From NCBI RefSeq assembly GCF_006345805.1, contig NW_021823758.1, positions 1 to 21,294 of the forward strand: a stretch of 21,294 bases of DNA. Direction: 5' to 3'. Made by a program: the position numbers and the translations under genes. Shown in pieces: positions 1 through 21,294 of this stretch (positions are counted from its first letter, which is position 1; every line of letters starts with the position of its first letter). The notes under the pieces were generated by a model. It saw only the letters and a list, made by a program, of their open reading frames with translations, was not told the origin of the DNA and made no database searches. This DNA is from Octopus sinensis. Lineage: Eukaryota.

Positions 1-282
1 CAACATTGTTAGAATATTTAATGTGTTTCTAGAGAGAGAGAGAGAGAGAGAGAGAGGCAGATGGTGGATTTAGAAATGTTAGTCTGTTTTATTGTGGACA
101 TATTGGGCTATTACATGGGACCACTGTAGAAAGTACAGAAATATTGACCAAAACCATAATGGTCAACATTTGACCATTAATGACAGGAATTGAATGTCTC
201 ACAATAAAAAGATAGAGTTTAATATAAATAAAGATAAAGAAATTTTATTATTAAATGTAAAACTTGGAAATATTTATTTCAG

Positions 283-360
283 AGGCTCCAAAGTTTGAAG
301 ACAGGTGTGTACAAACAGAGGCTATATGTCAGGAATTAGGGGCTGCATCTCAGGCAATTG
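283..360 (+). CDS. Putative 78-nt symmetric (phase 1-1) exon, array copy 1: (E)APKFEDRCVQTEAICQELGAASQAI(G)
   Basis: Flanked by tatttatttcag and gtgagt. Only the phase-1 frame is free of stops. Exon and flanks are homologous to the DD exon at 11904. Actual splicing is not shown by the sequence. Confidence 0.55.
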
Positions 361-612
361 GTGAGTATAAAATAATAGTTCCCAATTGATTTCTGTAAGG
401 TTTTCTTCCCCCGAGTATATTGTGCTTGAAAGAATAACTGAAAACAGCTTCCATTCCTATTTTCCAATTGAACAATTATCTGTATGATAATTGTATTAAA
501 GATATCGATTTACTGTGAGTTTATGAAATACCCATTGAGGTTAATGCTGTTGGTAATAATGTTCAAATTAGAAGACACAATAGAGTAAATTTTGTCATTT
601 GGTCACGGAACT

Positions 613-1450
613 CATCATCATCATCATCATTTAACATCCGTTTCTTATGGCGGCATGGGTCGGACGATTTCACTGGCAAGGCAGTAGGCTGCGTCAGGCT
701 GCAATGTGATCTGGCAAGGTTTCCACATATGTATGCCATTCCTAACGCCAACCACTCCGAGAGTGTGGTGGGTGCTTTTTACGTGCCACCGACACAGGAG
801 CCAGTCGGGGTTGGGGCTGGCATCGACCACGTTCGGATGGTGTTTCTTACGTGCCAACGGCACAGGGAACTAGTCAGGTGGCAGTGACAAGGACCTATGC
901 TTCTATGGTACTTATAACGTGACACAGGAACAGGTGCCAGTCAGGCGGCACTGGCATAGGTCACAACTACAATTTCCATTTTGATTTTGATCTTGATTTG
1001 ATTTTGATTTGTGATTTCTGGTTTTTGGTTTTACTTGACTCAGAAATTCTTCTCAAGCGCAACTTATCACTCTGTGATTCAAGGGTACTTTTAAAAAGGG
1101 CTGGTTATGCGCCACTGGTATAGGCTACAGCTGTGATCTCACTTCACTTGCCGAGTCCTCTTAATCACATCATATTTCCAGAGGTCTCTGTCTCTTGCCA
1201 TTACCTCTGTGAGGCCCAACATTCGAAGGTCGTTTCACCACGTTATCACCTGTCTTCCTGGGTCACCCCTTTCCACGGGTTCGTTCCACTGTTAGGGTGT
1301 AACACTTCTTCCCACAATTCTCCTCATCCATACACATGACAATACCAGTGCAGTTGTCTCTCTTGTACACCACATCTGATGCTTCTTATGTCTAACACTT
1401 CTCTCAGGCCTCTTCACTCTGCCTTGTGTGCACACTGACATCGTTGCATT
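613..1450 (-). mobile_element. 5'-truncated RTE-type LINE (ORF2 C-terminus, 3' UTR, (GAT)n tail), unit 1 copy
   Basis: The minus strand reads, with frameshifts, LREVLDIRSIRCGVQERQLHWYCHV..MDEENCGKKCYTLTVERTRGKG..DLRMLGLTEVMARDRDLWKYDVIKRTRQVK* (stop 1139-1141). The 3' UTR has ~60-bp subrepeats, and (CAT)6 lies at 613-630. Confidence 0.85.
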
Positions 1451-2364
1451 CAAATTATTTAATGAAAGATAGTCATTGTTATTTGACGGAAATGAATTAT
1501 GAATTAGTATTGGCAGTGGACTTGGTTATGGACTTGGTTCTATCTTTTCGTTGCTCATGGAACTACCATAATATTAGCTGTGCTGAGACACAATCATATT
1601 CATAGTAATGAAGGTTATATGTTCTTTACTCAGATTATATACAATCTATATTGATATCTAGTATTGCACCGTCAGGCACAGTGCCATTGTATCACATATA
1701 TACCCAATTATCATGATAATTAATAAGCTATAATTCATTAACTCTCTTACATTTGTATGTATGAAATGTAAACTTATTTTGTCATAGGAACATCGTGTAC
1801 CCTCACCTTACATTTTATATCTTGTTAGGGATCATGTTGGGGAAGGGTGTATGGAATTTGGCTTGTGGAGATGATTTTTAGGGGACAGATTGTGTGCGGG
1901 GTGGGGGGGTATGCACATAAAGGACATTTCTTTATGGGCTTAGTTTCACTTAATTAGAGAGGAATGTTGATTAGTGAATTCTAGAGATGAGAAGACTGTG
2001 CCATGCCATAGATTTGGCACAGTTATAAGAAAAGAAAGACAAAGCTAAGAGAAAACTGGTATGAAGTGTTAATTAAATGAGATAATTGCAACATTGTTAG
2101 AATATTTAATGTGTTTTTAGAGAGAGAGAGAGAGAGAGGGAGAGGGTGGATTTAGGAATGTTAGTCTGTTTTATTGTGGACATATTGAGTTATTACATGG
2201 GACCGCTGTAGAAAGTACAGAAATATTGACCAAAACCATAATGGTCAACAGTTGACCAGTAACGACAGGAATTGAATGACTCACAATAAAAAGATAGAGT
2301 TTAATAAAAATAAAGATAAAGAATGTTTATTATTAAATGTAAAACTTGGAAATATTTATTTCAG

Positions 2365-2442
2365 AGGCTACAAAATGTGAGGACAGGTGTGTACAAACAG
2401 AGGCTACATGTCAGGAATTAGGGGCTGCATCTCAGGCAATTG
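2365..2442 (+). CDS. Putative 78-nt symmetric exon, copy 2: (E)ATKCEDRCVQTEATCQELGAASQAI(G)
   Basis: Same AG/GT splice context as copy 1, open phase-1 frame, no indels. Confidence 0.55.
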
Positions 2443-2694
2443 GTGAGTATAAAATAATAGTTCCCAATTGATTTCTGTAAGGTTTTCTTCCCCCGAGTAT
2501 ATTGTGCTTGAAAGAATAACTGAAAACAGCTTCCATTCCTATTTTCCAATTGAACGATTATCTGTATAATAATTGAATTAAAGATATCGATTTACTGTGA
2601 GTTTATGAAATACCCATTGAGGTTAATGCTGTTGGTAATAATGTTCAAATTAGAAGACACAATAGAGTTAATTTTGTCATTTGGTCACAGAACT

Positions 2695-3530
2695 CATCAT
2701 CATCATCATCATTTAACATCCGTTTCTTATGGTGGCATGGGTCGGACGATTTCACTGGTAGGGCAGTAGGCTGCGTCAGGCTGCAATGTGATCTGGCAAG
2801 GTTTCCACATATGTATGCCATTCCTAACGCCAACCACTTCGAGAGTGTGGTGGGTGCCTTTTACGTGCCACCGACACAGGAGCCAGTTGAAGTTGGGGCT
2901 GGCATTGTCCACGTTCGGATGGTACTTTTTATGTGCCAACGGCACAAGGAGCCAGTCAGGCGGCACTGGCAACAAACAATGTTTGAATGGTACTTATTAC
3001 GTGCCACCGGCACGGGTGCCAGCCAGGCGGCACTGGCATCGGCCGTAATTACAATTTGCATTTTGATTTCGATCTTGATTTGATTTTGATTTGTGATTTC
3101 TGGTTTTTGGTTTTACTTGACTCAGAAATTCTTCTCAAGCGCAACTTATCACTCTGTGATTCAAGGGTACTTTTAAAAAGGGCTGGTTATGCAACACTGG
3201 TATAGGCTACAGCTGTGATCTCACTTCACTTGCCAAGTCCTCTTAATCACATCATATTTCCAGAGGTCTCTGTTTCTTGCCATTACCTCTGTGAGGCCCA
3301 ACTTTCGAAGGTCGTTTCACCACGTCATGCCCTGTCTTCCTGGGTCACCCCTTTGCACGGGTTCTTTCCACTGTGAGGGTGTAACACTTCTTTCCACAGC
3401 TCCCCTCATCCATACCATGACCATACCAGTGCAGTTGTCTATCTTGTACACACATCTGATGCTTCTTATGTCTAACACTTCCCTCAGGCCTCTTCACTCT
3501 GCCTTGTGTACACACTGACATCGTTGCGTT
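2695..3530 (-). mobile_element. RTE-type LINE 3' fragment, unit 2 copy
   Basis: Same insertion point and 5' truncation as unit 1. Contains QLHWYGH..MDEGSCGKKC, with the (CAT)n tail at 2695-2712. Confidence 0.85.
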
Positions 3531-3773
3531 CAAATTATTTAATAGAATATAGTCATTGTTATTTGACCGGGAAATGAATTAATTCATTAGTATTTGGCAG
3601 TGGACTTGGTTATATCTTTCTTCGTTTGCTCATGGAACTACCATAATATTAGCTGTGCTGAGAGACAATCATATTCATAGTAATGAAGGTTATATGTTCT
3701 TTACTCAGATTATATACAATCTATATTGATATCTAGTATTGCACCGTCAAGCACTGTGCCATTGTATCACGTA

Positions 3774-4340
3774 CACTTGCGTCGGCAATTAATTAGCACG
3801 TCTCAAATTTCTACATTTTGTTACATTTTCTTAATTTAATTAACTTATTATCAGAAACGAACTCGTTTTTAATCAAAAATTTATTAAAACATATCCCAGC
3901 ACACCACATAATTGATATTAATCGTGAAATTTAGTCAATATCTTGTTGCTCCTCCTTTGGCAGCAATGACTGCTGCTACGCGGGTCGGCATGCTGTCTAT
4001 GAGTGCCTGCAGGTACTGTGCAGGGATGGCCCCTCATGCAGCAAGAAGTGCCCCAAACAGCTCGTGTCGGTTCCTGTATTGCTGCACATTCAAATCCCTA
4101 CCCAATCGACTCCAGAGGTTCTCAATAGGGTTCAGGTCAGGTGTCTGGCCAGCACGTACTCCTCGCCACCAAAGAGGTATCCCGTACTATCTCAACGTAC
4201 TTTGCTGCGTTGATGTTGCCTTCGACGGCATAGAGCCGCCCAACACAACTGTAGCTGAACGCCCCTCACACCATCAGGCCACCCCCACCATGCTTCATGG
4301 TGAGCAAATCAAGGGTGCTAATTAATTTCTGACGGTAGTG
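3774..4340 (-). mobile_element. Internally deleted Tc1-family (DD34E-type) DNA transposon, 567 bp
   Basis: 26-bp TIRs at 3774-3799 and 4315-4340 (22/26 match), TA duplication at 3772-3773 and 4341-4342, and empty sites in units 1 and 3. Minus-strand remnants read TMKHGGGGLMV*GAFSYSCVGRLYAVEGNINAAKYVEI and TPDLNPIENLW...LIDSMPTRVAAVIAAKGGATRY* (3935-4147, internal stop 4034-4036). Confidence 0.93.
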
Positions 4341-5004
4341 TATATACCCAATTATCAAGATAAATAATTAGCTATAATTCATTAACTCTCTTACATTTGT
4401 ATGTCTGAAATGTAAACTTATTTTGTCATAGGAACATCGTGTACCCTCACCTTACATTTTATATCTTGTTAGGGATCATGTTGGGAAAGGGTGTATGGAA
4501 TTTGGCTTGTGGAGATGTTTTTTAGGGGACAGATTGTGTGCGGGTTGGAGGGTATGCATATAAAGGACATGTCTTTATGGGTGCAGTTTTACTTAATTAG
4601 AGAGGAATGTTGATTAGTGAATTCTAGATATGAGAGGACTGTGCCATGCCATAAATTTGGCACAGTTATAAGAAAAGAAAGACAATGCTAAGAGAAAACT
4701 GTCATCAAGTGTTAATTAAGTGAGATAATTGCAACATTGTTAGAATATTTAATGTGTTTTTAGAGAGAGAGAGAGAGAGAGAGAGGGTGGATTTAGGCAT
4801 ATTAGCCTGTTTTATTGTGGACATATTGGGCTATTACATGGGACCACTGTAGAAAGTACAGAAATATTGACCAAAACCATAATGGTCAACAGTTGACCAG
4901 TAACAACAGGAATTGAATGTCTCACAATAACAAAATAGAGTTTAAAAAAATAAAGATACAGACATTTTATTTTTAAATGTAAAACTTGGAAATATTTATT
5001 TCAG

Positions 5005-5082
5005 GTGCTCCAAAGTGTGAGGACAGGTGTGTACAAACAGAGGCTACATGTCAGGAATTAGGGGCTACATCTCAGGCAATTG
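5005..5082 (+). CDS. Putative 78-nt symmetric exon, copy 3: (G)APKCEDRCVQTEATCQELGATSQAI(G)
   Basis: Same AG/GT splice context, open phase-1 frame, no indels. Confidence 0.55.
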
Positions 5083-5334
5083 GTGAGTATAAAATAATAG
5101 TTCCCAATTGATTTCTGTAAGGTTTTCTTCCCCCGAGTATATTGTGCTTGAAAGAATAACTGAAAACAGCTTCCATTCCTATTTTCCAATTGAACAATTA
5201 TCTGTATAATAATTGAATTAAAGATATCGATTTACTGTGAGTTTATGAAATACCCATTGAGGTTAATGCTGTTGGTAATAATGTTCAAATTAGAAGACAC
5301 AATAGAGTAAATTTTGTCATTTGGTCATGGAACT

Positions 5335-6181
5335 AATCATCATCATCAACATCACAATCGTTTAACGTCCGTTTTTTATGGTGGCATGGATTGGATGATT
5401 TCACTGGCAAGGCAGTAGGCTGCGTCAGGCTCGAAAGTGATCTGGCAAGGTTTCCACATATGTTTGCCATTCCTAACGCCAACCACTCCGAGAGTATGGT
5501 GGGTGCTTTTTACGTGCCACCGACACAGTAACCAGTTGAAGTTGGGGCTGGCATCGACCACGTTCGGATGGTGCTTTTTACGTGCCAACGGCACAGGGAA
5601 CCAGTCAGGCGGCACTGGCAACAAACAATGTTTGAATGGTACTTATTACGTGCCACCGGCACGGGTGGAAGCCAGGCGGCTCTGGCATCAGCCATGATTA
5701 CAATTTGCATTTTGATTTCGATCTTGATTTGATTTTGATTTGTGATTTCTGGTTTTTGGTTTTACTTGACTCGGAAATTCTTCTCAAGCGCAACTTATCA
5801 CTCTGTGATTCAAGGGTACTTTTAAAAAGGGCTGGTTATGCGCCACTGGTATATGCTACAGCTCTGATCTCACTTCACTTGCCGAGTCCTCTTAATTACA
5901 TCATATTTCTAGAGGTCTCTGTCTCTTGCCATTACCTCTGTGAGGCCCAACGTTCGAAGGTCGTTTCACCACGTCATGCCCTGTCTTCCTGGGCCACCCC
6001 TTTCCACGGGTTCGTTCCACTGTTAGGGTGTAACACTTCTTCCCACAGCTCTCCTCATCCATACACATGACCATACCAGTGCTGTTGTCTCTCCTGTACA
6101 CCACATCTGATGCTTCTTATGTCTAACACTTCTCTCAGGCCTCTTCACTCTGCCTTGTGTACACACTGACATCGTTGCGTT
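5335..6181 (-). mobile_element. RTE-type LINE 3' fragment, unit 3 copy
   Basis: Same position and truncation. Contains MDEESCGKKCYTLTVERTRGKGWPRKT and a degenerate (CAT)n tail. Confidence 0.85.
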
Positions 6182-7103
6182 CAAATTATTTAATGAAAGA
6201 TAGTCATTGTTATTTGACCGGGAAATGAATTAATCATTAGTATTTGGCAGTGGACTTGGTTATATCTTTCTTCGTTTGCTCATGGAACTACCATAATATT
6301 AGCTGTGCTGAGACACAATTATATTCATAGTAATGACGGTTATATGTTCTTTACTCAGATTATATACAATCTATATTGATATCTAGTATTGCACCGTCAA
6401 GCACAGTGCCATTGTATCACATATATACCCAATTATCATGATAATTAATAAGCTATAATTCATTAACTCTCTTACATTTGTATGTCTGAAATGTAAATTT
6501 ATTTTGTCATAGGAACATCGTGTACCCTCACCTTACATTTTATATCTTGTTAGGGATCATGGTGGGGAAGGGTGTATGGAATTTGGCTTGTGCAGATGTT
6601 TTTTAGGGGACAGATTGTGTGCGGGTTGGAGGGTATGCATATAAAGGACATGTCTTTATGGGCTCAGTTTTACTTAATTAGAGAGGAATGTTGATTAGTG
6701 AATTCTAGAGATGAGAGGACTGTGCCATGCCATAGATTTGGCAGTTATAGAAAAGAAAGACAAAGCTAGAGAAAAACTCTTATCAAGTGTTAATTAAATG
6801 AGATAATTGCAACATTGTTAGAATATTTAATGTGTTTTTTTAAGAGAGAGGAGAGAGAGAGAGAGAGAGACAGAAGTGAGGGGGTTGGATTTAGAGATGT
6901 TAGTCTGTTTTATTGTGGACATATTGGGCTATTACATGGGACCACTTTAGAAAGTACAGAAATATTGACCAAAACCATAATGGTCAACAGTTGACCAGTA
7001 ACGACAGGAATTGAATGTCTCACAATAACAAGATAGAGTTTAATAAAAATAAAGATAAAGAAAGTTTATTATTAAATGTAAAACTTGGAAATATTTATTT
7101 CAG

Positions 7104-7181
7104 GGGCTCCAAAGTTTGAGGACAGGTGTGTACAAACAGAGGCTATATGTCAGGAATTAGGGGCTGCATCTCAGGCAATTG
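7104..7181 (+). CDS. Putative 78-nt symmetric exon, copy 4: (G)APKFEDRCVQTEAICQELGAASQAI(G)
   Basis: Same AG/GT splice context, open phase-1 frame, no indels. Confidence 0.55.
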
Positions 7182-7432
7182 GTGAGTATAAAATAATAGT
7201 TCCCAATTGATTTCTGTAAGGTTTTCTTTCCCCGAGTATATTGTGCTCGAAAGAATAACTGAAAACAGCTTCCATTCCTATTTTCCAATTGAACGATTAT
7301 CTGTATAATAATTGAATTAAAGATATCGATTTACTGAGAATTTATGAAATACCCATTGAGGTTAATGCTGTTGGTAATAATGTTCAAATTAGAAGACACA
7401 ATAGAGTTAATATTGTCATTTGGTCATGGAAC

Positions 7433-7433
<1 letters not shown>

Positions 7434-7469
<36 letters not shown>

Positions 7470-7748
7470 CATCATCATCATCGTTTAACGTCCGTTTTTA
7501 TAGTAGCATGGGTCGGACGATTTCACTGGCAAGGCAGTAGGCTGCGCCAGGCTCCAACGTGATCTGGCAAGGTTTCCACATATGTATGCCATTCCTAATG
7601 CCAACCACTCCGAGAGTGTGGTGGGTGCTTTTGAGTGCCACCAACACAGGAGCCAGTTGAGGTGGGAGCTAGCATTGACCACGTTCGGATGGTGCTTTTT
7701 ACTTTCCCCCGGCACAGGGAACCAGCCAGGCGGAACTTGCAACAAACC
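7434..7748 (-). mobile_element. RTE-type LINE 3' UTR and tail, unit 4 copy, cut at the array boundary
   Basis: About 16 CAT repeats (7434-7481) followed by the same 3' UTR, which ends within the subrepeats. Confidence 0.8.
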
Positions 7749-8099
7749 ACTGAATAACATTGTTATAAATTAAAAGGATTAAAAATCAAATCTCTAAGAT
7801 TATAAGTATAATGATCATTAACGTTGATTAAATATTAAATTTAGTATTGAACGGTGAACATCTGTTTGCATTTAAACAAAATATTGGTGTTGACATAAAA
7901 TATAAAGATAGGAATTAAATATGAGTTCCCTGTGTGACTTGATCTCACAAATCCTTGTTTGTAACTATATATAATATACACTTATTACATTGTTTGAACA
8001 ACATTTACCATCCATATAGTCATTCTTTTTCTCACTCTTGTTAGATTTTAGATGATATTAATGCTAAAAGAGGCACAGTTTTCTGAGTGTTTCACCCTT

Positions 8100-8425
8100 T
8101 GGTTTTAGTTCTGACTTGATTGTTGCATTCAAATTTGACTACTCCCACAGCTGTTGTCATCCTTTGTCAGGTTCAACTTCTTATTTCCTTCAATTTGGAT
8201 CTCCTGGCACTTCTTTATCCACATTTTTTAAATCCCCCATACTCCTCCCATATCTGTACCATCTCGTCTCTTGTGCGCTATCTCTGAAACTTCTAAACCC
8301 TAGTTTTGCTTCCAGCTCATCTCTGCTCCGGGACTTCAGCACATTAATATTACACTTCTTTTGAAGTATGCTCACTTCATTTTTTAACAGTTTTCATACA
8401 CCCTCTATACTCTGTGAAACATTCC
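8100..8425 (-). mobile_element. Degenerate RTE-type LINE ORF2 C-terminal fragment (paralogous to 13040-13660)
   Basis: The minus strand reads ..SRDELEAKLG..WIKKCQEIQIEGNKKLNLTKDD and aligns by eye to 13100-13350. Confidence 0.65.
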
Positions 8426-8444
8426 ATTTTACAAATACACATCA

Positions 8445-9058
8445 GGGTTCACCAACGATCAGTCCTCAGCCCGCTCTTATTCCTTATAGTCCTCCAGGCA
8501 ATAACAGGGAAATTCCAAGACAGGCTGCCCCTGGGAGCTCCTCTGTGCTGATGACCTTGGTCTAATAGTTGAGTCAATGCCAGAACTGGAGACAAAGTTT
8601 GGGGTGTGGAAGCAAGGTCTAGAATCGAATGGCCTTAGGTTTAACATAGCCAAACCCAAAGGCCTGGTAAGTAGGAAGGTTGAAAATCACAACCCCTTTC
8701 AAGTAGATGACCCTGCTCTATCTGTAGAAATGGAGAGGGTAGAAACTCCACACGATGTACCCGGTGTAAGCTATGGACGCATAATAAGTGCAGCTATATC
8801 AAAGGAAGGTTAACCATGAAAATAGATTTTGTAAGTGGCAGGTGCTCTGGGGCAATAAACACTGTAGATGTACAGAAAACAGATTCCATCACATGTCAGG
8901 GGAAGAAACTAATAGTTAATAGCTTCTGCTACCTAGGTAACCAAGTCTGTAGTTGGGATGGTTGCTCTGAGCGTGTAGCGACTAGAGTAAGAATAGCTGG
9001 GTAAAGTTCAGAGAGATGCCGCCTCTGCTGGCAACTAAAGTCCTTCTTTAAGGTGATA
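8445..9058 (+). mobile_element. Degenerate RTE-type reverse transcriptase fragment with a Cys/His finger insert
   Basis: With frameshifts it reads VHQRSVLSPLLFLIVLQAI..KTGCPWELLCADDLGLIVES..GLRFNIAKPK..CSICRNGEGRNSTRCTRCKLWTHNKC..SFCYLGN..RVRIA. The YADD motif appears as CADD. Confidence 0.85.
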
Positions 9059-9066
9059 AGTTGTGA

Positions 9067-9270
9067 ACTGAGTAGGTTTTGGCTACTAATTCTAGCAGAT
9101 CTCTCTACTACATGGAAATCCCTTTCTTAGTTTGTCTCCCTTGTTGTTAGAGATTAACTGCGGAAATAACGATACACTTTGAAATTTCATTTGTTGATGT
9201 TGTTGTTGTAAGTCCCATCATCTCCCTAGACACTTCCTCTGCTGTATAGACAAAATTAAAATCATGTGAA
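9067..9270 (+). repeat. Diverged copy of the sequence downstream of the DD stop codon (14670-14870)
   Basis: An exact 21-mer gctactaattctagcagatct occurs at 9082-9102 and 14683-14703, followed by about 170 bp of gapped similarity (..ttgttaga..ctttgaaat..ttgttg..tccctaracact..tagaca). Confidence 0.75.
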
Positions 9271-10019
9271 ATTCTTCCAAAAATGAAATGTGTAATTCCA
9301 TTTTGTAAAGCTTGCTTAAAAACATATTTTGCTTTCAAGTAGAACCATCTTGTAGACACAATTGTCAATAAATATATGGTTTCTATTTCTCGCAGCCAAT
9401 ATTTTTACATTAGGAGTATTCCGTATGAATTCAAACAAAATTTAAAAGGAAGAAACTTTTCACTTGACCAACTCAGATTTGGCTCAGATGGTTTTTGGTA
9501 ATGCATAAAGAATACATGTATAATTAGTGTTCAACCACTAAGGGTTTCAATGATATGCCCTACCGAACTTTGAGGGCCACACCCCTCGTGGAGCAAGAAT
9601 GTCAATTTATACGATTTTGGTGCTGAACGCTTTTAAAACTATTCATATTTGTCTGAAATTGGCTACAGCGTGTAATCTGCAATCAGATCGGCCAGAATCT
9701 GCTATCAGAATTCCTCTATTATCTTCCTCCATATTCACGTTATTGGCCTTTCAAATAGGAACATTTTCATGGGCGGAATTTTTTTTTTAAATCAATATTC
9801 AAGGGACCCCCATTGGGCCATGATGTAATACAAGAAAACGTGTGGTGCGTTTTTTCGCTTTCAGGATTGATCTGTCCATGGTAAGCATACTGATAATGCT
9901 CAAGGCATAATATAACATTTAGAGGCTCCTGAAAATGGCTCAGGGTGAAAAAATAACATTGGTTGTGTGAAATATGAAAGTGAGAGGAAAATGCCGTGTC
10001 TTAGATTTGGCCCAAATGT

Positions 10020-10270
10020 AAGAAAGGAAAAACAGAAGAGAAAAGCAGGGTGTCAAGTGATAATAAATGTGATAATTACCACATTGTTAGATTATGTAGA
10101 GCATCTTAATAGAAAGAGGAGATTTAGGAAGGTTGGTCCATTTTGTTGTGGACATAATATTGAGCTATTACATAGGAAATCTGTAGAAAATATGAAAATG
10201 TTAACCGAAGCCATAGTGGTTTCTCATTGCGCATTGTAGAAAGGATTATCAATACAAATAAAGAAATTTT
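10020..10270 (+). repeat. Diverged partial copy of the intron segment that precedes the array and DD exons; no exon follows
   Basis: acattgttag..gatttagga..ttgtggacat..attacat..ctgtagaaa..accgaagccatagtgg matches unit positions ~2030-2330, then breaks into HERO-like sequence. Confidence 0.7.
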
Positions 10271-10334
10271 ACAAGACTCGAGTGCCACAAAAGCAGCCCC
10301 TTGAGAAAGTGGCACAAAACTTAGTTAATGACCA

Positions 10335-10800
10335 CAAAAATTATTGATGGAAGCAATAGACTTCTTTTATATATGCGAAAGGTGTTGCTATAACAACTTC
10401 AAAATGTGCTTCATGAAAGAAAACTTCACAACAGACTGGCACCTTCTTGAGATTGGAATTGCTGTAGTTTGTACAGCATTTGTTTTCTGCTTATGATGGA
10501 GATTTTATGATCAGCAGGTTGATCATAAGAAACGGCTCAAGTGGATTCATCTAAAGAGACTCCATGGATGACATCACAATACTAACAAGAGACCCAAAGA
10601 TATGCAAATAGTTCTGGATCAACTAATTACTTGGTGAATAATGAAGGTTAAAGTAAATACGTAATGCAGTCTGTCATTTGTCATATTTAAGCAGAAGCAA
10701 GTAAATTTCAAAAATAACTGGAGAAACGAGACCAAATGTTAAAGACAATCCTATATAAAGATTAGGACGATGGTGTGCTAGCTTGCTGTCTGGTAGGAAA
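10335..10800 (+). mobile_element. Degenerate HERO-like (REL-endonuclease clade) non-LTR RT fragment, central RT motifs
   Basis: Remnants KLLMEAIDFFYI, YNNFKMCFMKENFTTDWHLLEIGIAVVCT, MDDITILT (MDD at 10564-10572) and LITW..MK..GETRPNVKDNPI*RLGRW (10762-10773). Clade assignment is from recalled motifs. Confidence 0.55.
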
Positions 10801-10969
10801 CGAGGAATTGATACATACCTTGTCACAGATGTAAGAATTATAAGCAGTAGATACGCCAAAGTGTATTATGATGCACAAATACCATGTATCAAAATGTCAA
10901 CATCATGTCTGCTGTTCAATACTCTGTAAACATTGTAAAGCTGCAACGGAGTCTACGAAGCAGTGACCA

Positions 10970-11275
10970 GCATGTCTTCAGATGTGTCTCCAGTGAAGCT
11001 GACGTCTTTGAACGCAGCCTTAAGTTCAATTCAGATGGCTGTTAATGCTCCTAGAGACGGTGGTCAAATCTGGCTGGACATGGTCGCTGTTCGAAGGCCT
11101 TATACATGACAGCAGAATGCAGTTCCTTTCCATACCAGCAGGAAGAATCAGAAGTGACTGTCGGAGAATTTATACGGCTTCCATGGACCCATGTTTAGCC
11201 TCCTAATTGCCTTGATTGTAATCCCATGGATTATTATGTCTGGAGCAGAGTTGAAAAAGAGACCATCCGCTCTGA
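10970..11275 (+). mobile_element. Degenerate mariner-like transposase fragment, DD37D (maT) type
   Basis: Remnants CVSSE.DV..FE..L..NSDG, WLDMVAVRRPYT*QQN(D)AVPFHTSRKNQK*LSEN and *PPNCLDCNPMDYYVW. There are 37 residues between the second catalytic position (11116-11118, mutated to N) and the final D (11229-11231) after one frameshift. TIRs were not found. Confidence 0.75.
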
Positions 11276-11309
11276 CCGCAACAACTGAAACAGGAAATGA
11301 GGTTGGATT

Positions 11310-11670
11310 AGAGAAAAACTCCTTCAGAACCCTTATGATGTTAATAGGAATCTAAATGCAGATGCTATGTGAAGTAGTGTAAAATGTACTGAGGATGAAC
11401 TGGACAGGTATATACAGGATCCCTACAGTGACCCACAGCAAGGCCAGCAGTTCCAGCTCAAGGAGGGTTTGAAATATCGAATGAAGCTGGGAATCAAATT
11501 TCAGCAAAGTGATTTCAGCCAACACCAATCAGATAGCTGTGTGAAGAAGGCAAGAGCAATGGGTGCCCCAGAAGGCGATAGTATACCATAGAAGGTGTAC
11601 AAGTATTTGTACAGGATTCTGTTATAAGCTTTACGTACGACTTAGAGAATTGTGGTACAGAAGTAAACTA
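11310..11670 (+). mobile_element. Degenerate HERO-like non-LTR fragment, N-terminal RT region
   Basis: Remnants LQNPYDV, EDELDRYIQDPYSDPQ and VKKARAMGAPEGDSIP*KVYK (11544-11603). Confidence 0.55.
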
Positions 11671-11903
11671 GTTCGTCGAGTAATAATTAAATCAGATAAC
11701 TGCTAAGTTAATTGATAATGTAGGATATTTTAATAGATACAAGAAGTTTAGGGAAGGTGAGTCTATTTAGTTGTGGATCTAAATATTGACCATTGATAAT
11801 AGGAATGTCTTACAATATAAAATACACTAATAAAATAAAGACCAATTAACAGAGACAAAGAAATTGTACTGTGAAGTGTAAAGTTTGGAAATATTTATTT
11901 CAG

Positions 11904-11974
11904 AGTCTCTAAAACTGAATGGGGAGTATCTCCAAAGAGCAGCAAAGAAGTTAGGGGGCAACTGGCAGCAAGCA
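11904..11974 (+). CDS. Penultimate exon encoding the DD N-terminal part; carries an apparent 1-nt deletion in GGGG 11954-11957
   Basis: Acceptor atatttatttcag and donor CAG|gtgagt. As written it is 71 nt. The phase-1 frame gives ESLKLNGEYLQRAAKKLG and a second frame gives GNWQQA-G. One extra G makes a 72-nt phase 1-1 exon, ESLKLNGEYLQRAAKKLGGNWQQA(G), that joins in frame to RFLG of the terminal exon and supplies the conserved DD Trp. Confidence 0.75.
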
Positions 11975-13039
11975 GGTGAGTATAGAATACCTAATTGCTT
12001 TCTATAAATTTTGCCATTACTTGAAGTTTTGTTTGTTAAAATGACAACGAAAAAGTTCCATTCGTAATTTCCTGTTGAAATGTTAGCTAAAGATATTACT
12101 GAAACTTCATAAAATATTCACCGAAATTAGCATAGTTTTGCATACTTGGTGAAATTAGAAAATACAATAGAGTTGATACAAGGAACGAAGTGCTTTTGTT
12201 ATTTAAAGGTAAACAGGTGAGTTAATAGCGACGCTTCTGTTGTTTACGTTGTTTACGTTTCTACTTAATTTAATGATAGATTGTTGTTGTTGTTGTGTAG
12301 ACTTAATCTGGCAATATTATGAAGAAAGGTGTTCCAGGTGTGACATAACTGCTTCACCTGGGAGACAAGGACCAAATTACCAAATGGAACTTTTTAAACA
12401 GGAGAGTGTGCATTTTATGTGACATGTTGTAGTCTGCCCTTTCGCCAGTCTGTTTTCCTATATTTATAGTAATTCTTTAGCCCCAGGTCAACCTATTGTC
12501 TTGTCTCTAAACAGACAAGTCACTTTGTTGATTGTCTTCATTGCTGGATTGAACTCAGTACTTATAAGTTAATGAAGCACTTCCTAATTATAAAATAATT
12601 ATGCCATCATATGTAAATTCGAATTGATTTTGTTTCTCACTTGAAATCACTTCACTCTTCATTACATTACAAAAGTCATTTGGAAAGGCATGAACATCAC
12701 AATAACCCACTTCCCCTTGTCTGAATGTGTAACAACATAAAATACCATTTATACAATGTTCCCATTATTTATACAAATGCCTTCCCATGGTACCTATATG
12801 CATCTAGGTAGACTGCATCATAGAGAGACGCCTTTAGCAGGGATATAGAGCAGTGCCAGGGACTAGATTTGAACCTTCCAGCCTGGATACAAGAAGTCAT
12901 GACAATATCCTGTCAGTCAGCTGATAGAAATGGTTTATCTAAATTAAGAGAGGATATCATCTATGACATGTCGAACATGTTATACCTTGGAATTAATATA
13001 AAATCTAACAGTCATACTAGGCTAAAATCAATCCACAAA

Positions 13040-13660
13040 CAACGGTTCATCATCATCATCATCATCATCCTCATCTTGTTTCATTTCTCGAAGTTTGAAT
13101 GAGTTAGACTACTTATCTCACAGCTGTTGTCGTCCTTTGACAGCTTTAACTTCTTGTTTACTTCCATCTGGATTTCCTGGTACTTCTTTATCCAGCTTGT
13201 ATCTTCCGTACGCCTCCCATATCTGCACCACCTAGTTTTTCTTCCAGTTCATTTTTTTCTCTGTGATTTCTACACATTAGCATTACACATCCAGTAAAGA
13301 ATGCTCTCTTAATTTCTTGCCAGTTTTCATACATCCTCCATATTCAATGCATCATTGGATCATACAATCTGCCCTTCATTTGGAAACGGAACCTCTTTGT
13401 TACCAACAGCCATAATAGCTAACTGTGCATTTTCACCTCATCTTTTGCTCTAAATAGTATGAATGCAAAATAGTTTCCTCCACTTTTAATTATGTTACCA
13501 AGGTAACAGAAACCATCAACTACAACTTCCATAGTTGTTCTTACTATAGCGACCCCTGTATATCTGCTAATGACAAAGTATTTCCTCTACCCTGTGAACA
13601 TACCTCTGGTCCCACTGCATCACCTTGGCTTATAGAATTCCTACTTACCCACTTCTTTCC
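13040..13660 (-). mobile_element. Degenerate RTE-type LINE 3' part with (GAT)n tail, inside the last intron of the DD gene
   Basis: The minus strand reads VVDGFCYLGN..LLVTK..MKGRLYD..WMCNANV..ELEEKLG..WIKKYQEIQME, with (CAT)n at about 13047-13073. Confidence 0.75.
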
Positions 13661-14330
13661 TGTTAATTAAAACTCTATTCATTGCTAGGTTTACTCCATT
13701 GTCGACATCTCTCTCCATTGTGGCCTTGATCCAGTGAAAGAAATCCTTATTATGAGTCATGAACCAAGAAAATTAATTTCGTGTCTTCTATAATATTTGA
13801 GGAGAACTAAGAAATATTATATTTTTTGTGTCATTGTGATCATTCTGGTATCTTGTCTATTTTTTATTTAATTGGTCACCGTGTACCGAATATTACAGGT
13901 AATGTTTGTCAACTCAGTCCCCACTTTCCAGATATGTCTAAATGTTGATATTCCAGACGAGGAAGGGGTATCACACATCATTATTTCCAGCGTTGATGTT
14001 ATCAGATGGTTTTTCAAAGCCTTCCTTAAAAAAGCATATTTTCCACACAAATACTGCTCCTGTCAGCTGTTTACCATACATTTTCTCAAATCCTTCATTC
14101 TTTTTAATATTTCTTCTTCTTACTTCTTTATTTTAACCTCTTTGTTATTTTTGTCAACATTCTTAAAAATAGAGAACAATGCCTTATAGTTTTCATGTTT
14201 CTTATTTATTTCGTTATTTCTCTATTGATGTAGATCTTTGTTATATTATATACTTACTTACAGTACATAGTCTTTGTATTATTGTTAATGTTGTTGTTGC
14301 TGTTATTTTCTGTCGTTGTATCTTTTGCAG

Positions 14331-14536
14331 GACGTTTTCTAGGAGTTCCAGCAATTGACCAGGATATTATCAAGAACGATTTCCCTTGTGACACAGTAAA
14401 ACAGAGTTATCAAATGCTTTGTGAGTGGTTTATAAATTGTAAACCAGAGGAACGTACAGTTGAGACCCTCAGAAAAGCCCTTAAAGATGCTGAGTGCTTT
14501 GCTGCCCTTGAGTATCTCTCATTATATGAACGGTGA
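14331..14536 (+). CDS. Terminal coding exon of a death-domain protein (C-terminal ~3/4 of a DD)
   Basis: Pyrimidine-rich acceptor tcttttgcag ends at 14330. The phase-1 frame reads (G)RFLGVPAIDQDIIKNDFPCDTVKQSYQMLCEWFINCKPEERTVETLRKALKDAECFAALEYLSLYER* with TGA at 14534-14536. The pattern R.LG...I..I......Q.YQML..W......TV..L..AL is the typical DD consensus. Confidence 0.85.
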
Positions 14537-16155
14537 ATTTCTGTGTAAATTCTACTGTTGTTTACTCCCAGGTGAATGCTGACCAAAGAGAGAGACCTTT
14601 GACCAAAGTATAGAGAACCAAGAACCACATTCTCCAATTTGTCCTCCTTTACAATGATGAGGTGTGGAGTGCAGTGGATTTAGCTACTAATTCTAGCAGA
14701 TCTATCTCTCACATAAGAGATACCCTTCACTGGTTTGGTTCCTTTGTTAGAAATTAGCTTTTGAAATAAAGATAAACTTTGAAATATCCGTTTGTTGTTG
14801 TTGCTGTTGTTGTATATATAATCACTTCCCTAAACACTTTCATTGTTATTTAGACAGTTTTAATATCCTCTGCCAAATTAATAGTTATCTCCCTTCATTT
14901 ATAGCTTAGAACAAAATGTCTGGTATACATACATTGATGTTTTTTTTCTATGAATATATATCACATAGAGATAGTATTTCTATATAATAAATGATATCTC
15001 TCTTTGTTCTGTTATGGTTTAAGACCAGTTTAAAGTGGGGATGCTTGTATAAAACTTCATGGGGTTGTGAGTGCAATTAAGAATCATTATATTTTGTATT
15101 CTAGCTCTAGGCTGCTCTTTATTTTCTAGCTACCGAGTTTTAATAAATTTAAATTTAAGTATAACTGTCATAATGAAATAACATCACAGTATTTGTTACT
15201 GTAATTTCATGTGATTGAGGAAAAGTCACAGTGAGCCCACAGTATCGGAATAAATTGAGATAATGGAAAAGTTCTATTTTGCCCAACAATTTTTAACATC
15301 ATACTACTCGGATGTTATCGCATTTTGATTTTTATTTTAATTTCATAATTCTTTGCACCATAGACGTAGAAAAGTTTTTAAAGAAGTAAAACACTTGAAG
15401 CTTCCTTGGTGGACTTCCTTTGTCTATAAAATTGTGGGATGTGACAGAAAGCTCTACCGTACATAATTTAATGAAACAAGATTGTAAGACACATAGTCAT
15501 TATCCACTGGTTGTAGGATTCTTTTCTGATAGGAGTTAATAAATCTGGTTTAATTTGGAAATTAAATACAAAACTATTTAAATTGCCTCAATTTTAATTC
15601 GGAAATTGATAAGAAATTGCTATTGAGAGGGAAAAGAAAAAAGGCATTTGAGGAGTATGCATACCCTGTGCGCAGATAAAGTTTTTTTTTCTCAAATTAT
15701 AGTATGGCTTACAATGCGTTTCTTAGACATACTTTTGCATTGAACTAACTTAAGCTTTGTAATTGTTTGCCTAAGAGACGATTGAAAGTCTAAGAAGATG
15801 ACAGCTAAAAGTGGACTTGACCGATGTCTACGGCAAACCGTAAAAGTAAAATTTGCAAATGACTAAATAAATGGTTATTCAAATAAAAATCATGATTATG
15901 AAAACGAAAGTGAACAAAATGAAATAAGTATAGAAAATATTGCATAGAATTTCAGAAGTGTTTTCAACGTTTTTCAATGAAGGCAAGAGAATCAAACGCA
16001 GGATATAAATAATAAGGCTACTTGCTGATCGGGAAATTCGTAAGCTCGATTTTATTTCATTTTTTTGTTTTAAGTATCACCATTATAGGTATATACATTC
16101 TGGTGAAATTAAGAAATCAACTCGTAAATAAACGAAACTCTCGCATCCATCACTG

Positions 16156-18285: not shown

Positions 18286-21044
18286 GGGAGAGAGAAAGCA
18301 AGAAAAGGGGGAGCATACAGTAATATATAATGAGGTGGGAGAGCGGAGGGAGGGGGAGAGAGAAAGCAAGAAAGGGGGGAGCATACAGTAATATATAATG
18401 AGGTGGGAGAGCGGAGGGAGAGGGAGAGAGAAAGCAAGAAAAGGGGGAGCATACAGTAATATATAATGAGGTGGGAGAGCGGAGGGGGGGAGAGAAGAGA
18501 AAGCAAGAAGGGGGAGCATACAGTAATAATAATGAGGTGGGAGAGCGGAGGGAGGGGGAGAGAGAGAAAGAACAAGAAAAGGGGGAGCATACAGTAATAT
18601 ATAATGAGGTGGGTGCGGAGGGAGGGGGGAGAGAGAAAGCAAGAAAGGGGGGAGCGAGCATACAGTAATATATAATGAGGTGGGAGAGCGGAGGGAGGGG
18701 GAGAAAGAAAGCAAGAAAGGGGGGGAGCATACAGTAATATATAATGAGTGTGTGAGAGCGGAGGGAGGGGGGGAGAGAGAAAGCAAGAAAAGGGGGAGCA
18801 TACAGTAATATATAATGAGGTGGAGAGCGGAGGGAGGGGGGAGAGAGAAAGCAAGAAAAGGGGGAGCATACAGTAATATATAATGAGGTGGGAGAGCGGA
18901 GGGAGGGGGAGAGAGAAAGCAAGAAAGGGGGAGCATACAGTAATATATAATGAGGTGGGAGAGCGGAGGGAGGGGGAGAGAGAGAGAGGGGGAGAGAGAA
19001 GCAAGAAAGGGGGAGAGCATACAGTAATATATAATGAGGTGGGAGAGGCGGAGGGAGGGAGTGGAGAGGAGAGAGAAGCAAGAAAGAAAGGGGGAGCATA
19101 CAGTAATATATAATGAGGTGGGAGAGCGGAGGGAGGGGGAGAGAGAGAAAAGCAAGAAAGGGGGGGGAGCCATACAGTAATATATAATGAGGGGGGGAGA
19201 GCGGAGGGAGGGGGAGAGAGAAAGCAAGAAAGGGGGGAGCATACAGTAATATATAATGAGGTGGGAGGAGAGCGGAGAGAGGGGGAGAGAGAAAGCAAGA
19301 AAAAAGAAAAGGGGGAGCATACAGTAATATATAAAGAGGTGGGAGAGCGGAGGGAGGGGGAGAGAGAGAAAGCAAGAAAAGGGGGGGAGCATACAGTAAT
19401 ATATAATGAGGTGAGAGAGCGGAGGGAGGGGGAGAGAGAATGCAAGAAAAGGGGAGGGGAGCATACAGTATATATAATGAGGAGAGTGAGGAGAGGGAGG
19501 GAAGGGGGAGAGAGAAAGCAAGAAATGGGGGGAGCATATACAGTAATATATAATTAGGTGGGAGAGCGGAGGGAGGGGGAGAGAGAAAGCAAGAAAAGGG
19601 GGGAGCATACAGTAATATAAAATGAGGTGGGATGGAGCGAGCGGAGGGAGGGGGAGAGAGGAAGCAGAAAAAGGGGGAGCATACAGTAATATATAATGAG
19701 GTGGGAGAGCGGAGGGAGGGGGAGAGAGAGGAAGCAAGAAAAGGGGGGGGGGAGGGGGGCATACAGTAATATATAATGAGGTGGGAGAGCGGAGGGAGGG
19801 GGAGAGAGAAAGCAAGAAAAGGGGGAGCATACAGTAATATATAATGAGGTGGGAGAGCGGAGGGAGGGGGAGAGAGAAAGCAAGAAAAGGGGGAGCATAC
19901 AGTAATATATAATGAGGTGGGAGAGCGGAGGGAGGGGGAGAGAGAAAGCAAGAAAAGGGGGAGCATACATACAGTATATATAGAGGGGGAGAGGAGGAGA
20001 GCGGAGGGAGGGGGAGAGAGAAAGCAAGAAAAGGGGGGAGCATACAGTAATATATAATGAGGTGGGAGAGCGGAGGGAGGGGGAGAGAGAAAGCAAGAAA
20101 AGGGGGGAGCATACAGTAATATATAATGAGGTGGGAGAGCGGAGGAGGGGAGGAGAGATAAAGCAAGGAAAAGGGGGAGCATACAGTAATATAATGATGT
20201 GGGAGAGAGCGGGAGAGCGGAGGGAGGGGGAGAAAGAAAGCAATAAAGGGGGAGCATACAGTAATATATAATGAGGTGGGAGAGCGGAGGGAGGGGGAGA
20301 GAGAAAGCAAGAAAAGGGGGGAGCATACAGTAATATATACTGAGGTGGGAAAGCGGAGGGAGGGGGAGAGAGATAGCAAGAAAAGAAAGGGGGGAGCATA
20401 CAGTAATATATAATGGGGTGGGAGAGCGGAGGGAGGGGGAGAGAGAAAGCAAGATAGGGGAGCATACTGTAATATATAATGAGGTGGGAGAGCGGAGGGG
20501 GGGGGAGAGAGAAAGAAAGAAAAGGGGGAGCATACAGTAATATATAATGAGGTGAGAGAGCGGAGGGAGGGGGAGAGAGAAAGCAAGAAAAGGGGAGCAG
20601 GGGAGCATACAGTATATATAATGTGGGAGAGCGGGAGAGGGGGAGAGAGGAGAGAGAGAAAGCAAGAAAAGGGGGGGAGCATACAGTAATATATAATGAG
20701 GTGGAGGGAGGAGAGGGAGGGAGAGGGAGGGGGAGAGAGAAAGCAAGAAAAGGGGGGAGCATACAGTAATATATAATGAGGTGGGAGAGCGGAGGGAGGG
20801 GGAGAGAGAAAGCAAGAAAAGGGGGAGCATACAGTAATATATAATGAGGTGGGAGAGCGGAGGGAGGGGGAGAGAGAAAGCAAGAAAAGGGGGAGCATAC
20901 AGTAATATATAATGAGGTGGGAGAGCGGAGGGAGGGGGAGAGAGAAAGCAAGAAAAGGGGCGAGCATACAGTAATATATAATGAGGTGGGAGAGCGGAGG
21001 GAGGGGGAGAGAGAAAGCAAGAAAAGGGGGGAGCATACAGTAAT
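18286..21044 (+). repeat. 68-bp purine-rich tandem repeat, about 39-40 copies
   Basis: Consensus GAGCATACAGTAATATATAATGAGGTGGGAGAGCGGAGGGAGGGGGAGAGAGAAAGCAAGAAAAGGGG. The period of 68 was measured at 19811, 19879 and 19947. Many copies have indels in G, A and GA runs. Confidence 0.97.
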
Positions 21045-21294
21045 CGGCCATGATTGGATGGTGCTTTTTACGTCCACCGCACGGGGGCCAGACGAGGCTG
21101 GCAACGACCACAATCGGAAGGTGCATTTTATGTGCCACCGGCACGAGGCCAGTCGGGGCGGCGCTGGCAACGGTCACGTTCGGATGGTTCTCTTAGATGC
21201 CATCGGCACTGGTATCACAGCTACAATTTCCATTGATGTTGATCAATTTCGATTTTGATTTTCACTTGACTCAACAGGCCTTCACAAGTAGGGT
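21045..21294 (-). mobile_element. RTE-type LINE 3' UTR subrepeat region (same family as in the array units), distal end missing
   Basis: Subrepeats ggtgctttttacgt..gtgccaccggcacg..gccagtc..ctggca..cacgttcggatgg and the following ctacaatttccatt..gattttgatttt..cttgactca match 770-1040. Confidence 0.8.

Follow-up and report, generated by a model that had tools for sequence, protein, structure and literature searches.

The 21,294-bp stretch of Octopus sinensis DNA analysed here (hereafter the window) is one complete unplaced contig and represents the 3′ part of the gene LOC118768646, whose 5′ part lies outside the contig. Within it, four 78-nucleotide exons precede the two exons that encode a death domain (DD). 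We consider it probable that these four are cassette exons that arose by duplication of the first DD exon (DD exon 1), and that they encode a disordered linker of variable length between a RING domain and the DD of a protein family restricted to Octopus. The exons, with their best matches at an O. vulgaris locus termed L001, are as follows.

283 to 360, + strand: linker cassette exon copy 1; 78 nucleotides, phase 1-1, APKFEDRCVQTEAICQELGAASQAI; the first exon of XP_036371385.1.
2365 to 2442, + strand: linker cassette exon copy 2; ATKCEDRCVQTEATCQELGAASQAI; best match at L001 35868, with flanks 97.0% identical.
5005 to 5082, + strand: linker cassette exon copy 3; APKCEDRCVQTEATCQELGATSQAI; best match at L001 38551, with flanks 99.5% identical and the exon identical.
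7104 to 7181, + strand: linker cassette exon copy 4; APKFEDRCVQTEAICQELGAASQAI; best match at L001 40574.
11904 to 11975, + strand: DD exon 1; 72 nucleotides, phase 1-1, SLKLNGEYLQRAAKKLGGNWQQA; the apparent parent type of the cassette exons.
14331 to 14536, + strand: last DD exon; RFLGVPAIDQ...LSLYER*, stop TGA; matches Pfam Death and is included in the model P0001.

All six exons are already present in a single RefSeq partial model, in which the four 78-nucleotide exons are stacked ahead of the DD. The product of the six exons matches this model, XP_036371385.1 (P0001), in a protein search at 99% identity and 99% coverage; it is a 195-residue O. sinensis protein encoded on the window contig and named ‘uncharacterized protein LOC118768646, partial’. 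When 11904-11975 is joined to 14331-14536, the product matches the Pfam Death family (PF00531) with 36.5 bits (E 5.5e-9) and P0001 does so with 36.7 bits, both above the gathering cut-off of 22.6 bits, and the encoded domain is thus a DD. Its best genuine match among solved structures in a PDB sequence search is the DD of RIPK1 (6ac5_A, E 1.9e-4). Artificial alphaRep proteins topped those matches through spurious short repeated alignments to ‘ERTVETLRKALKD’ and were disregarded.

The four exons have the properties that the original prediction ascribed to them, as each is preceded by ag, followed by gtgagt, and open only at phase 1 (offset 2), with a stop in both other frames. The predicted in-frame difference of 6 nucleotides is likewise present, since the cassette exons span 78 nucleotides and DD exon 1 spans 72. 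The exons lie in larger repeated units whose features are listed here.

1 to 7750, + strand: tandem array of four ~2.08-kb units, the left one cut by the contig end.
3772 to 4342, strand not assigned: internally deleted Tc1/mariner-like element of ~570 bp inserted in unit 2; also present at L001 ~37322-37890.
9981 to 10220, + strand: old upstream portion of the DD-exon-1 unit; its homologous sequence lies 120-380 nucleotides ahead of each cassette exon.

Each array unit comprises one cassette exon and a SINE-like element with (TCA)n, and the units are 90-94% identical to each other by self-BLAST. Because the window begins inside a unit, the array may extend leftward. Exons of equal length and phase that are homologous in sequence and in both intron flanks constitute a tandem-exon-duplication array, and the four exon copies in the window differ from one another at only 1-6 nucleotides. 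Differences by which the 78-nucleotide exons can be told apart fall at exon positions 1-2, 6, 11, 13, 17, 43 and 63. The Tc1-like element is bounded by 28-nucleotide inverted terminal repeats at 3772-3799 and 4315-4342 that are 86% complementary, and it gives a weak DDE_3 match (E 6e-4) under Pfam’s threshold. This insert explains why unit 2 has a spacing of 2.64 kb instead of 2.08 kb.

Homology of the cassette exons to DD exon 1, in the exon and in both flanks, had been proposed from inspection and is borne out by alignments, by shuffling, and by a shared acceptor. The upstream flank of DD exon 1 (11786-11913) is 73-80% identical to the corresponding flank of each copy (E 1e-6 to 4e-14), and the repeat unit (exon -150/+250) aligns nearly end to end with the DD-exon-1 regions of paralogous loci at 66-67% identity (E 1e-30 to 8e-34). 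In a six-sequence alignment, conserved blocks flank the exon on both sides, and the exon-to-exon alignment score exceeds those of 1000/1000 shuffles. The four repeats and DD exon 1, five window exons in total, have an identical 19-nucleotide acceptor context, ttggaaatatttatttcag. The same context is identical or carries 1-3 mismatches in paralogous DD exon 1 and in 51-nucleotide linker exons, and the donors are all gtgagtat.

Linker exons in the family come in sizes of 78, ~57 and 51 nucleotides, all of phase 1-1 and all with flanks that can be aligned with those of DD exon 1. Their products in paralogues form a graded series, from SPVLKERDLLRVAKRLGRDWWQ (DD exon 1) through APKFEDRCVQTEATCQELGAASQAI (26 residues) and SPKSEDKCVQTEVASEEI (~19 residues) to the 17-residue forms NRTFEVKETQTLAEPV, RPKFKEKASQRVAEPV and ARPIFEDKEVQTVEEPR. 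The predicted replacement of the conserved Trp by Ser in the repeats follows from the protein alignment on which it was based (LGGNWQQAG vs LGAASQAIG). The remnant at 9981-10220 is ~70% identical to 1988-2245, and 1.57 kb of transposon-like sequence lies between it and position 11786. The two halves of the DD-exon-1 unit adjoin each other in O. vulgaris (L001 50687-50883 and 50890 onward). The shared acceptor, donor, phase and flanks, together with the graded intermediates, support descent from DD exon 1, and from these sequence relationships the entire linker region of the family appears to have been built by duplicating the first DD exon serially in tandem.

The domains that precede the array, which the original prediction suggested seeking to the left of the window, were sought through the matching O. 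vulgaris locus, where exon copies were located by a Hamming-distance scan. L001 carries ankyrin exons, a RING exon at 30429-30566, and then five intact 78-nucleotide exons, such that ankyrin repeats and a RING precede the array. The L001 array (34969-41756) is 95-96% identical to that of the window, with unit-level matches of up to 99.8%. Copy 4 reaches this value against L001 40574 over 478 nucleotides, with 97.1% identity in the flank comparison, and the best-matching L001 units for copy 1 are those at 33417 or 42363. The alignment between the species spans the Tc1-like insert, which is common to both, and the array therefore predates the split of the two species. The comparison of copy number across species that had been called for gives at least four copies in the window, five in the matching O. 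vulgaris array, and one to four in paralogues. On two other short O. sinensis contigs, the sequence breaks off after RING exons and a run of repeat exons (2 on one and >3 on the other); the O. sinensis assembly is fragmented at these arrays. Candidates for the 5′ part of the window gene are the contigs of XP_036354468 and XP_036355812, of which the second ends within a fourth repeat exon.

Members of this family, which are annotated ‘MIB2-like’, consist of ankyrin repeats, one RING, 0 to ~7 short linker exons, and a C-terminal DD. Homologues were found only in Octopus (O. sinensis, O. vulgaris and O. bimaculoides), with 79 clusters at E <= 1e-30 when a paralogue was used as the query. A HMMER scan of 1.84 billion representatives yielded 65 hits at E <= 1e-3, and eight of the ten that were looked up are from Octopus; the two weak exceptions among those ten are unrelated metagenome proteins. 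Pfam scans of the full-length paralogues P0106, P0113, P0029 and P0094 identify only Ank families, one zf-C3HC4_3 domain and Death, and no MIB/HERC2, ZZ or MIB-repeat domains. Lacking MIB/HERC2 and ZZ domains, the family members are not true Mind bomb proteins. The original prediction that the system had not been described stands insofar as our literature searches for an octopus Ank-RING-DD family turned up no description of it, and fails insofar as the gene models are already in RefSeq.

Evidence for exon use comes from RefSeq isoform models produced by Gnomon. The labels ‘isoform X2’ and ‘isoform X3’ on O. vulgaris proteins (CAJ accessions) are names transferred by the submitter rather than Gnomon models, and were not used as splicing evidence. 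The isoform sets of paralogues cover every combination of repeat exons, and the window’s own gene is represented by one partial model. For example, an O. sinensis paralogue with three array exons has isoforms X1-X8 that carry ABC, ABC, AB, AC, BC, A, B and C, respectively. On contig L005, isoforms X1 and X2 differ by one 26-residue exon. In other genes, isoforms X1-X12 differ by 26- and 17-residue steps, and the listed isoforms X9-X22 by 5-17-residue steps. The zero-linker isoform P0097 joins the RING exon straight to DD exon 1.

Among the 172 family proteins retrieved, 49 carry one to four of the 26-residue repeats, and models with 0, 1, 2, 3 or 4 copies are all present. In the 49 repeat-bearing models, the sequence after a repeat exon is a further repeat in 44 cases, a short linker exon in 18, DD exon 1 in 17, intron read-through in five, and a different sequence in three. 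As anticipated from their symmetry, the exons can be stacked or skipped, and the isoform models of paralogues combine them freely. Of the two products originally envisaged, these models bear out the second, a 26-residue repeat linker of variable length ahead of an intact DD, as evident by the four repeats stacked in XP_036371385.1 and by the varied content of the paralogue’s X1-X8. By extension, we infer that the exons of the window locus are spliced in the same manner.

Reading through the donor of copy 1 (window 361-387), and likewise after each copy, yields GEYKIIVPN and then a stop. Several models in both species (P0019, P0020, P0026 and P0027) end in GEYKIIVPN* after a repeat exon. These modelled ends suggest intron retention or early polyadenylation, which would give Ank-RING-linker proteins that lack the DD.

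Structure prediction indicates that the repeats have left the DD fold. For the full-length paralogue P0029, AlphaFold2 with a 35-sequence alignment gives pLDDT values of 80-93 for the ankyrin repeats, ~80 for the RING and 81-88 for the DD, and values of 28-30 with no secondary structure for residues 180-257, which correspond to three repeat exons. With a 19-sequence alignment for P0001, residues 1-106 have pLDDT <50, and confidence is low even for the DD. Across predictions the repeats have pLDDT values of 28-37 and essentially no secondary structure, and so are not predicted to form the helical bundle of a DD. When concatenated and searched alone, they give no Death match at E <= 1 and no convincing match to any Pfam domain. 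These predictions favour an interpretation of the repeats as a disordered linker of n x 26 residues, acidic and containing Cys, that connects RING and DD.

These observations can be joined in the following scheme. A genomic unit of ~2 kb, which would have originated when DD exon 1 was copied together with its flanks, duplicated repeatedly in tandem, and the resulting cassette exons would no longer belong to the death domain fold. At the genomic level, linker length may vary by unequal crossing-over and gene conversion among near-identical units. At the transcript level, each symmetric exon, being equipped with the same strong acceptor and donor, may be included or skipped independently. The DD, which among solved structures is nearest to that of RIPK1, would presumably dock the protein onto other DD assemblies, and the RING may then ubiquitylate components at those assemblies. 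The linker would set the distance, reach and flexibility between the two domains.

Several observations weigh against this account. At L001 in O. vulgaris, the DD region that follows the matching array shares only ~70% identity with that of the window. Accordingly, either the window's gene is a mosaic paralogue or the contig, being rich in repeats, is mis-joined. The isoforms are Gnomon models only, and because the 78-nucleotide exons are ~95% identical, short-read junctions can be mis-assigned and the combinatorial picture may be inflated. The predicted disorder rests on shallow alignments (19 and 35 sequences) drawn only from the family. Furthermore, 15 copies of the 26-residue exon, taken from five loci, have a nucleotide diversity of 0.052, with values of 0.056 and 0.042 in the flanking introns, and the ratio of nonsynonymous to synonymous changes (N:S) at variable in-frame sites is ~10:3, as compared with a neutral expectation of 164:50 (3.3:1). 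Comparison of the two species shows differences at 6/312 sites in the best-matching exons and at 87/3369 in their flanks (p = 0.58). In these sequence comparisons, purifying selection on the amino acid sequence of the copies is not detectable, and there appears to be little or no constraint, with omega <= 0.3 only marginally excluded (p ~0.05, a binomial estimate from the N:S counts at 13 variable sites). The original caution that the copies are young, and that open frames alone do not prove selection, was therefore apt, as evident by exon divergence that equals intron divergence and by the neutral N:S.

The same paralogues provide an explanation for this apparent youth. Taken with 250 nucleotides of intron to either side, the 26-residue exon unit shows 94-96% identity from one paralogue to another, as determined with the following units.

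L001 33167 to 33744
L003 17515 to 18092
L004 55769 to 56346
L005 11527 to 12104
window 6854 to 7431

Among these paralogues the RING exons are only 59-68% identical and the DD-exon-1 regions only 72-74%. Judging from this disparity, old paralogues have evidently exchanged or homogenised the unit, through gene conversion or through unequal crossing-over within gene clusters. Such homogenisation makes the copies look young. It can also keep young copies intact by itself, which weakens the value of intact copies as evidence for selection and adds to the points against the account.

An alternative, which we judge unlikely, is that the exons are neutral by-products: young copies produced by unequal crossing-over, whose inclusion is splicing noise and whose isoform diversity is in part a mapping artefact. 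The equal divergence of exon and intron, the neutral N:S and the homogenisation of units among paralogues are all as such a process would leave them. Moreover, one paralogous copy is modelled as coding despite a frameshift within it that is compensated (APKSEDRCVKKSYMSGLGAASQAI), and related linker exons have decayed splice sites. Those at L001 31683-31733 and L005 9751-9801, in both species, have an atgagt donor with the frame open; that at L001 46111-46161 has a ttgagt donor; and that at L003 25325-25372 is diverged and has lost its acceptor. The existence of decayed linker exons indicates that the arrays evolve by birth and death of exons.

Other evidence opposes neutrality. Stops or broken splice sites in the 26-residue exon copies of relatives were looked for, as they would count against a functional array, and 15/15 copies from the five loci are intact, being open with ag and gtgagtataaaa. 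Over the same copies the donor is invariant from +1 to +12, and diversity in the acceptor (-20 to -1) is 0.019, as compared with 0.042-0.056 in the introns. Even units whose overall identity is no more than 66-70% share the acceptor context exactly or almost exactly. Dozens of paralogues, and also the more distant O. bimaculoides, have kept short linker exons of this common origin in frame. Neutral divergence of the exon sequence can also be accommodated by the linker account, as the functional variable may be length rather than residue identity.

A more elaborate form of the linker account seems doubtful to us, and less likely than neutrality. It holds that linker length is regulated, with the number of 26- and 17-residue exons set per tissue or per immune challenge, and that the family shares an exchanged ‘cassette library’. 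If this were true, changes in exon number would alter the reach between the RING and the RIPK1-like DD or, through paired cysteines, cause redox-dependent compaction or oligomerisation. It would also mean that a 2-kb unit built from recycled DD helix-1 exons is actively exchanged among dozens of old paralogues.

The other product originally envisaged, a chimeric DD in which a repeat exon is spliced to the last DD exon and helix 1 is replaced by Cys-bearing N-terminal helices, is very improbable. The phases would permit it, since exons of phase 1-1, as all of these are, can be joined to a last exon that begins in phase 1, and an in-silico chimera scores 27 bits against Pfam Death, which exceeds the cut-off given above. 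Truncated DDs are at least modelled, as in the O. vulgaris protein P0008 (locus L002), where the RING exon is joined to the last DD exon. However, the last DD exon follows a repeat exon in 0 cases in the 49 repeat-bearing models of the 172 family proteins, and the repeats lack the conserved helix-1 Trp and are predicted to be unstructured. The related suggestion of a decoy DD is likewise not supported, as the repeats alone neither match Death nor are predicted to fold.

Least probable of all is a Dscam-style mutually exclusive cluster that places exactly one array exon in each mRNA to provide alternative linker sequences: X6, X7 and X8 of one paralogue each carry a single, different array exon, but the same paralogue has ABC, AB, AC and BC isoforms, the window’s own model stacks four exons, models carry 0-4 copies, neither frame (exon lengths are multiples of 3) nor steric constraint (introns are >2 kb) enforces exclusivity, and a choice among copies that differ at only 1-6 nucleotides would yield almost no diversity.

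The array is of the ordinary tandem exon-duplication kind, found in an annotated but unstudied octopus family, and is not a system for swapping parts of a DD. Tandem duplication that gives rise to alternatively spliced exons is a general phenomenon (PMC8373072), and the octopus array resembles other examples in its adjacent homologous exons, equal phase, homologous flanks, local duplication and alternative use in models. Most described cases are mutually exclusive pairs inside a folded domain, whereas the octopus copies are additive, are stacked in any number, and lie outside the parent domain in a disordered linker. Dscam1-type arrays (PMC4835542) are similar in having tandem homologous exons in a gene of the immune or recognition type. 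Unlike them, the octopus array has no exclusivity and almost no copy diversity, such that length varies rather than specificity.

In titin, the number and the skipping of the PEVK repeat exons determine how long a spring they encode. Much as proposed for octopus, the exons are short, symmetric and numerous, their product is of low complexity or disordered, and its length is adjusted by including them to different extents. The protein context and scale are different, and the octopus exons derive from part of a DD exon.

With regard to domain content, mammalian MIB2 is reported to ubiquitylate the DD protein RIPK1 in TNF signalling (PMC5912950). The octopus proteins share with MIB2 the order of ankyrin repeats and then a C-terminal zf-C3HC4_3 RING, but they have a single RING and a DD of their own, which true MIB proteins lack, and the further MIB2-type domains sought by Pfam were not found in them. 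Among the expanded inhibitors of apoptosis (IAPs) of oyster are mollusc proteins in which a DD and an IAP-type RING occur together (PMC8917759). In both groups, a single protein unites a DD with a RING of the IAP/MIB type in a lineage-specific architecture, and the groups differ in that the octopus family has ankyrin repeats in place of BIR domains, a RING-then-DD order, and a repeat-exon linker between the two.

None of these findings overturns current understanding. The locus does offer a clean example of an exon for the start of a folded domain that appears to have been duplicated serially and put to new use as a spacer, one that is disordered and alternatively spliced. The homogenised exon unit among old paralogues is an instance of concerted evolution confined to one part of a gene. 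The family itself, with dozens of genes in Octopus only, is a plausible, unstudied part of cephalopod cell-death or innate-immune signalling.

When window 7752-9961, downstream of the array, is compared with L001 43560-44826 and L004 55108-60237, the L004 sequence matches better, at 90-94%, and window 9040-9961 matches this paralogue at 94%. Neither an O. vulgaris counterpart of the window’s DD exon 1 nor any O. vulgaris protein containing it was found. L002, the locus of P0008, was considered as the counterpart of the window’s DD and rejected as a paralogue, since only the last exon matches (90% identity to the window’s last DD exon) and DD exon 1 is missing. The P0008 model (L002 10001-15746), with its RING exon joined directly to the last DD exon, has a truncated DD, and all that is left of DD exon 1 at L002 is a 100-nucleotide remnant of its upstream flank.

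Retroelement and transposon debris occupies 8440-9060 and 10380-11300, within the long intron that separates DD exon 1 from the array. It includes a reverse-transcriptase fragment (RVT_1, E 3e-4), and related pieces recur in paralogous linker regions; another part resembles the tail of a mariner-type transposase by eye and lacks a Pfam match. Matches between 8134-8434 and 13104-13367, and between 9040-9273 and 14641-14879, were considered as a second, decayed DD gene tail and proved to be retroelement fragments. tRNA and Rfam scans of the window found nothing.

The SINE-like element of the array units lies at 600-960, 2690-3040, 5335-5690 and 7430-7745. It starts with (TCA)n and contains 68-nucleotide internal sub-repeats, and the (TCA)n length varies by unit, with 16.7 copies in unit 4. 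At 18288-21044 there is a satellite of 2.76 kb, composed of ~38.5 copies of a 68-nucleotide purine-rich unit with 81% matches and a GC skew of ~+0.77. The sequence that follows it to the end of the window (21045-21294) is the same SINE-like sequence that is present in each array unit.

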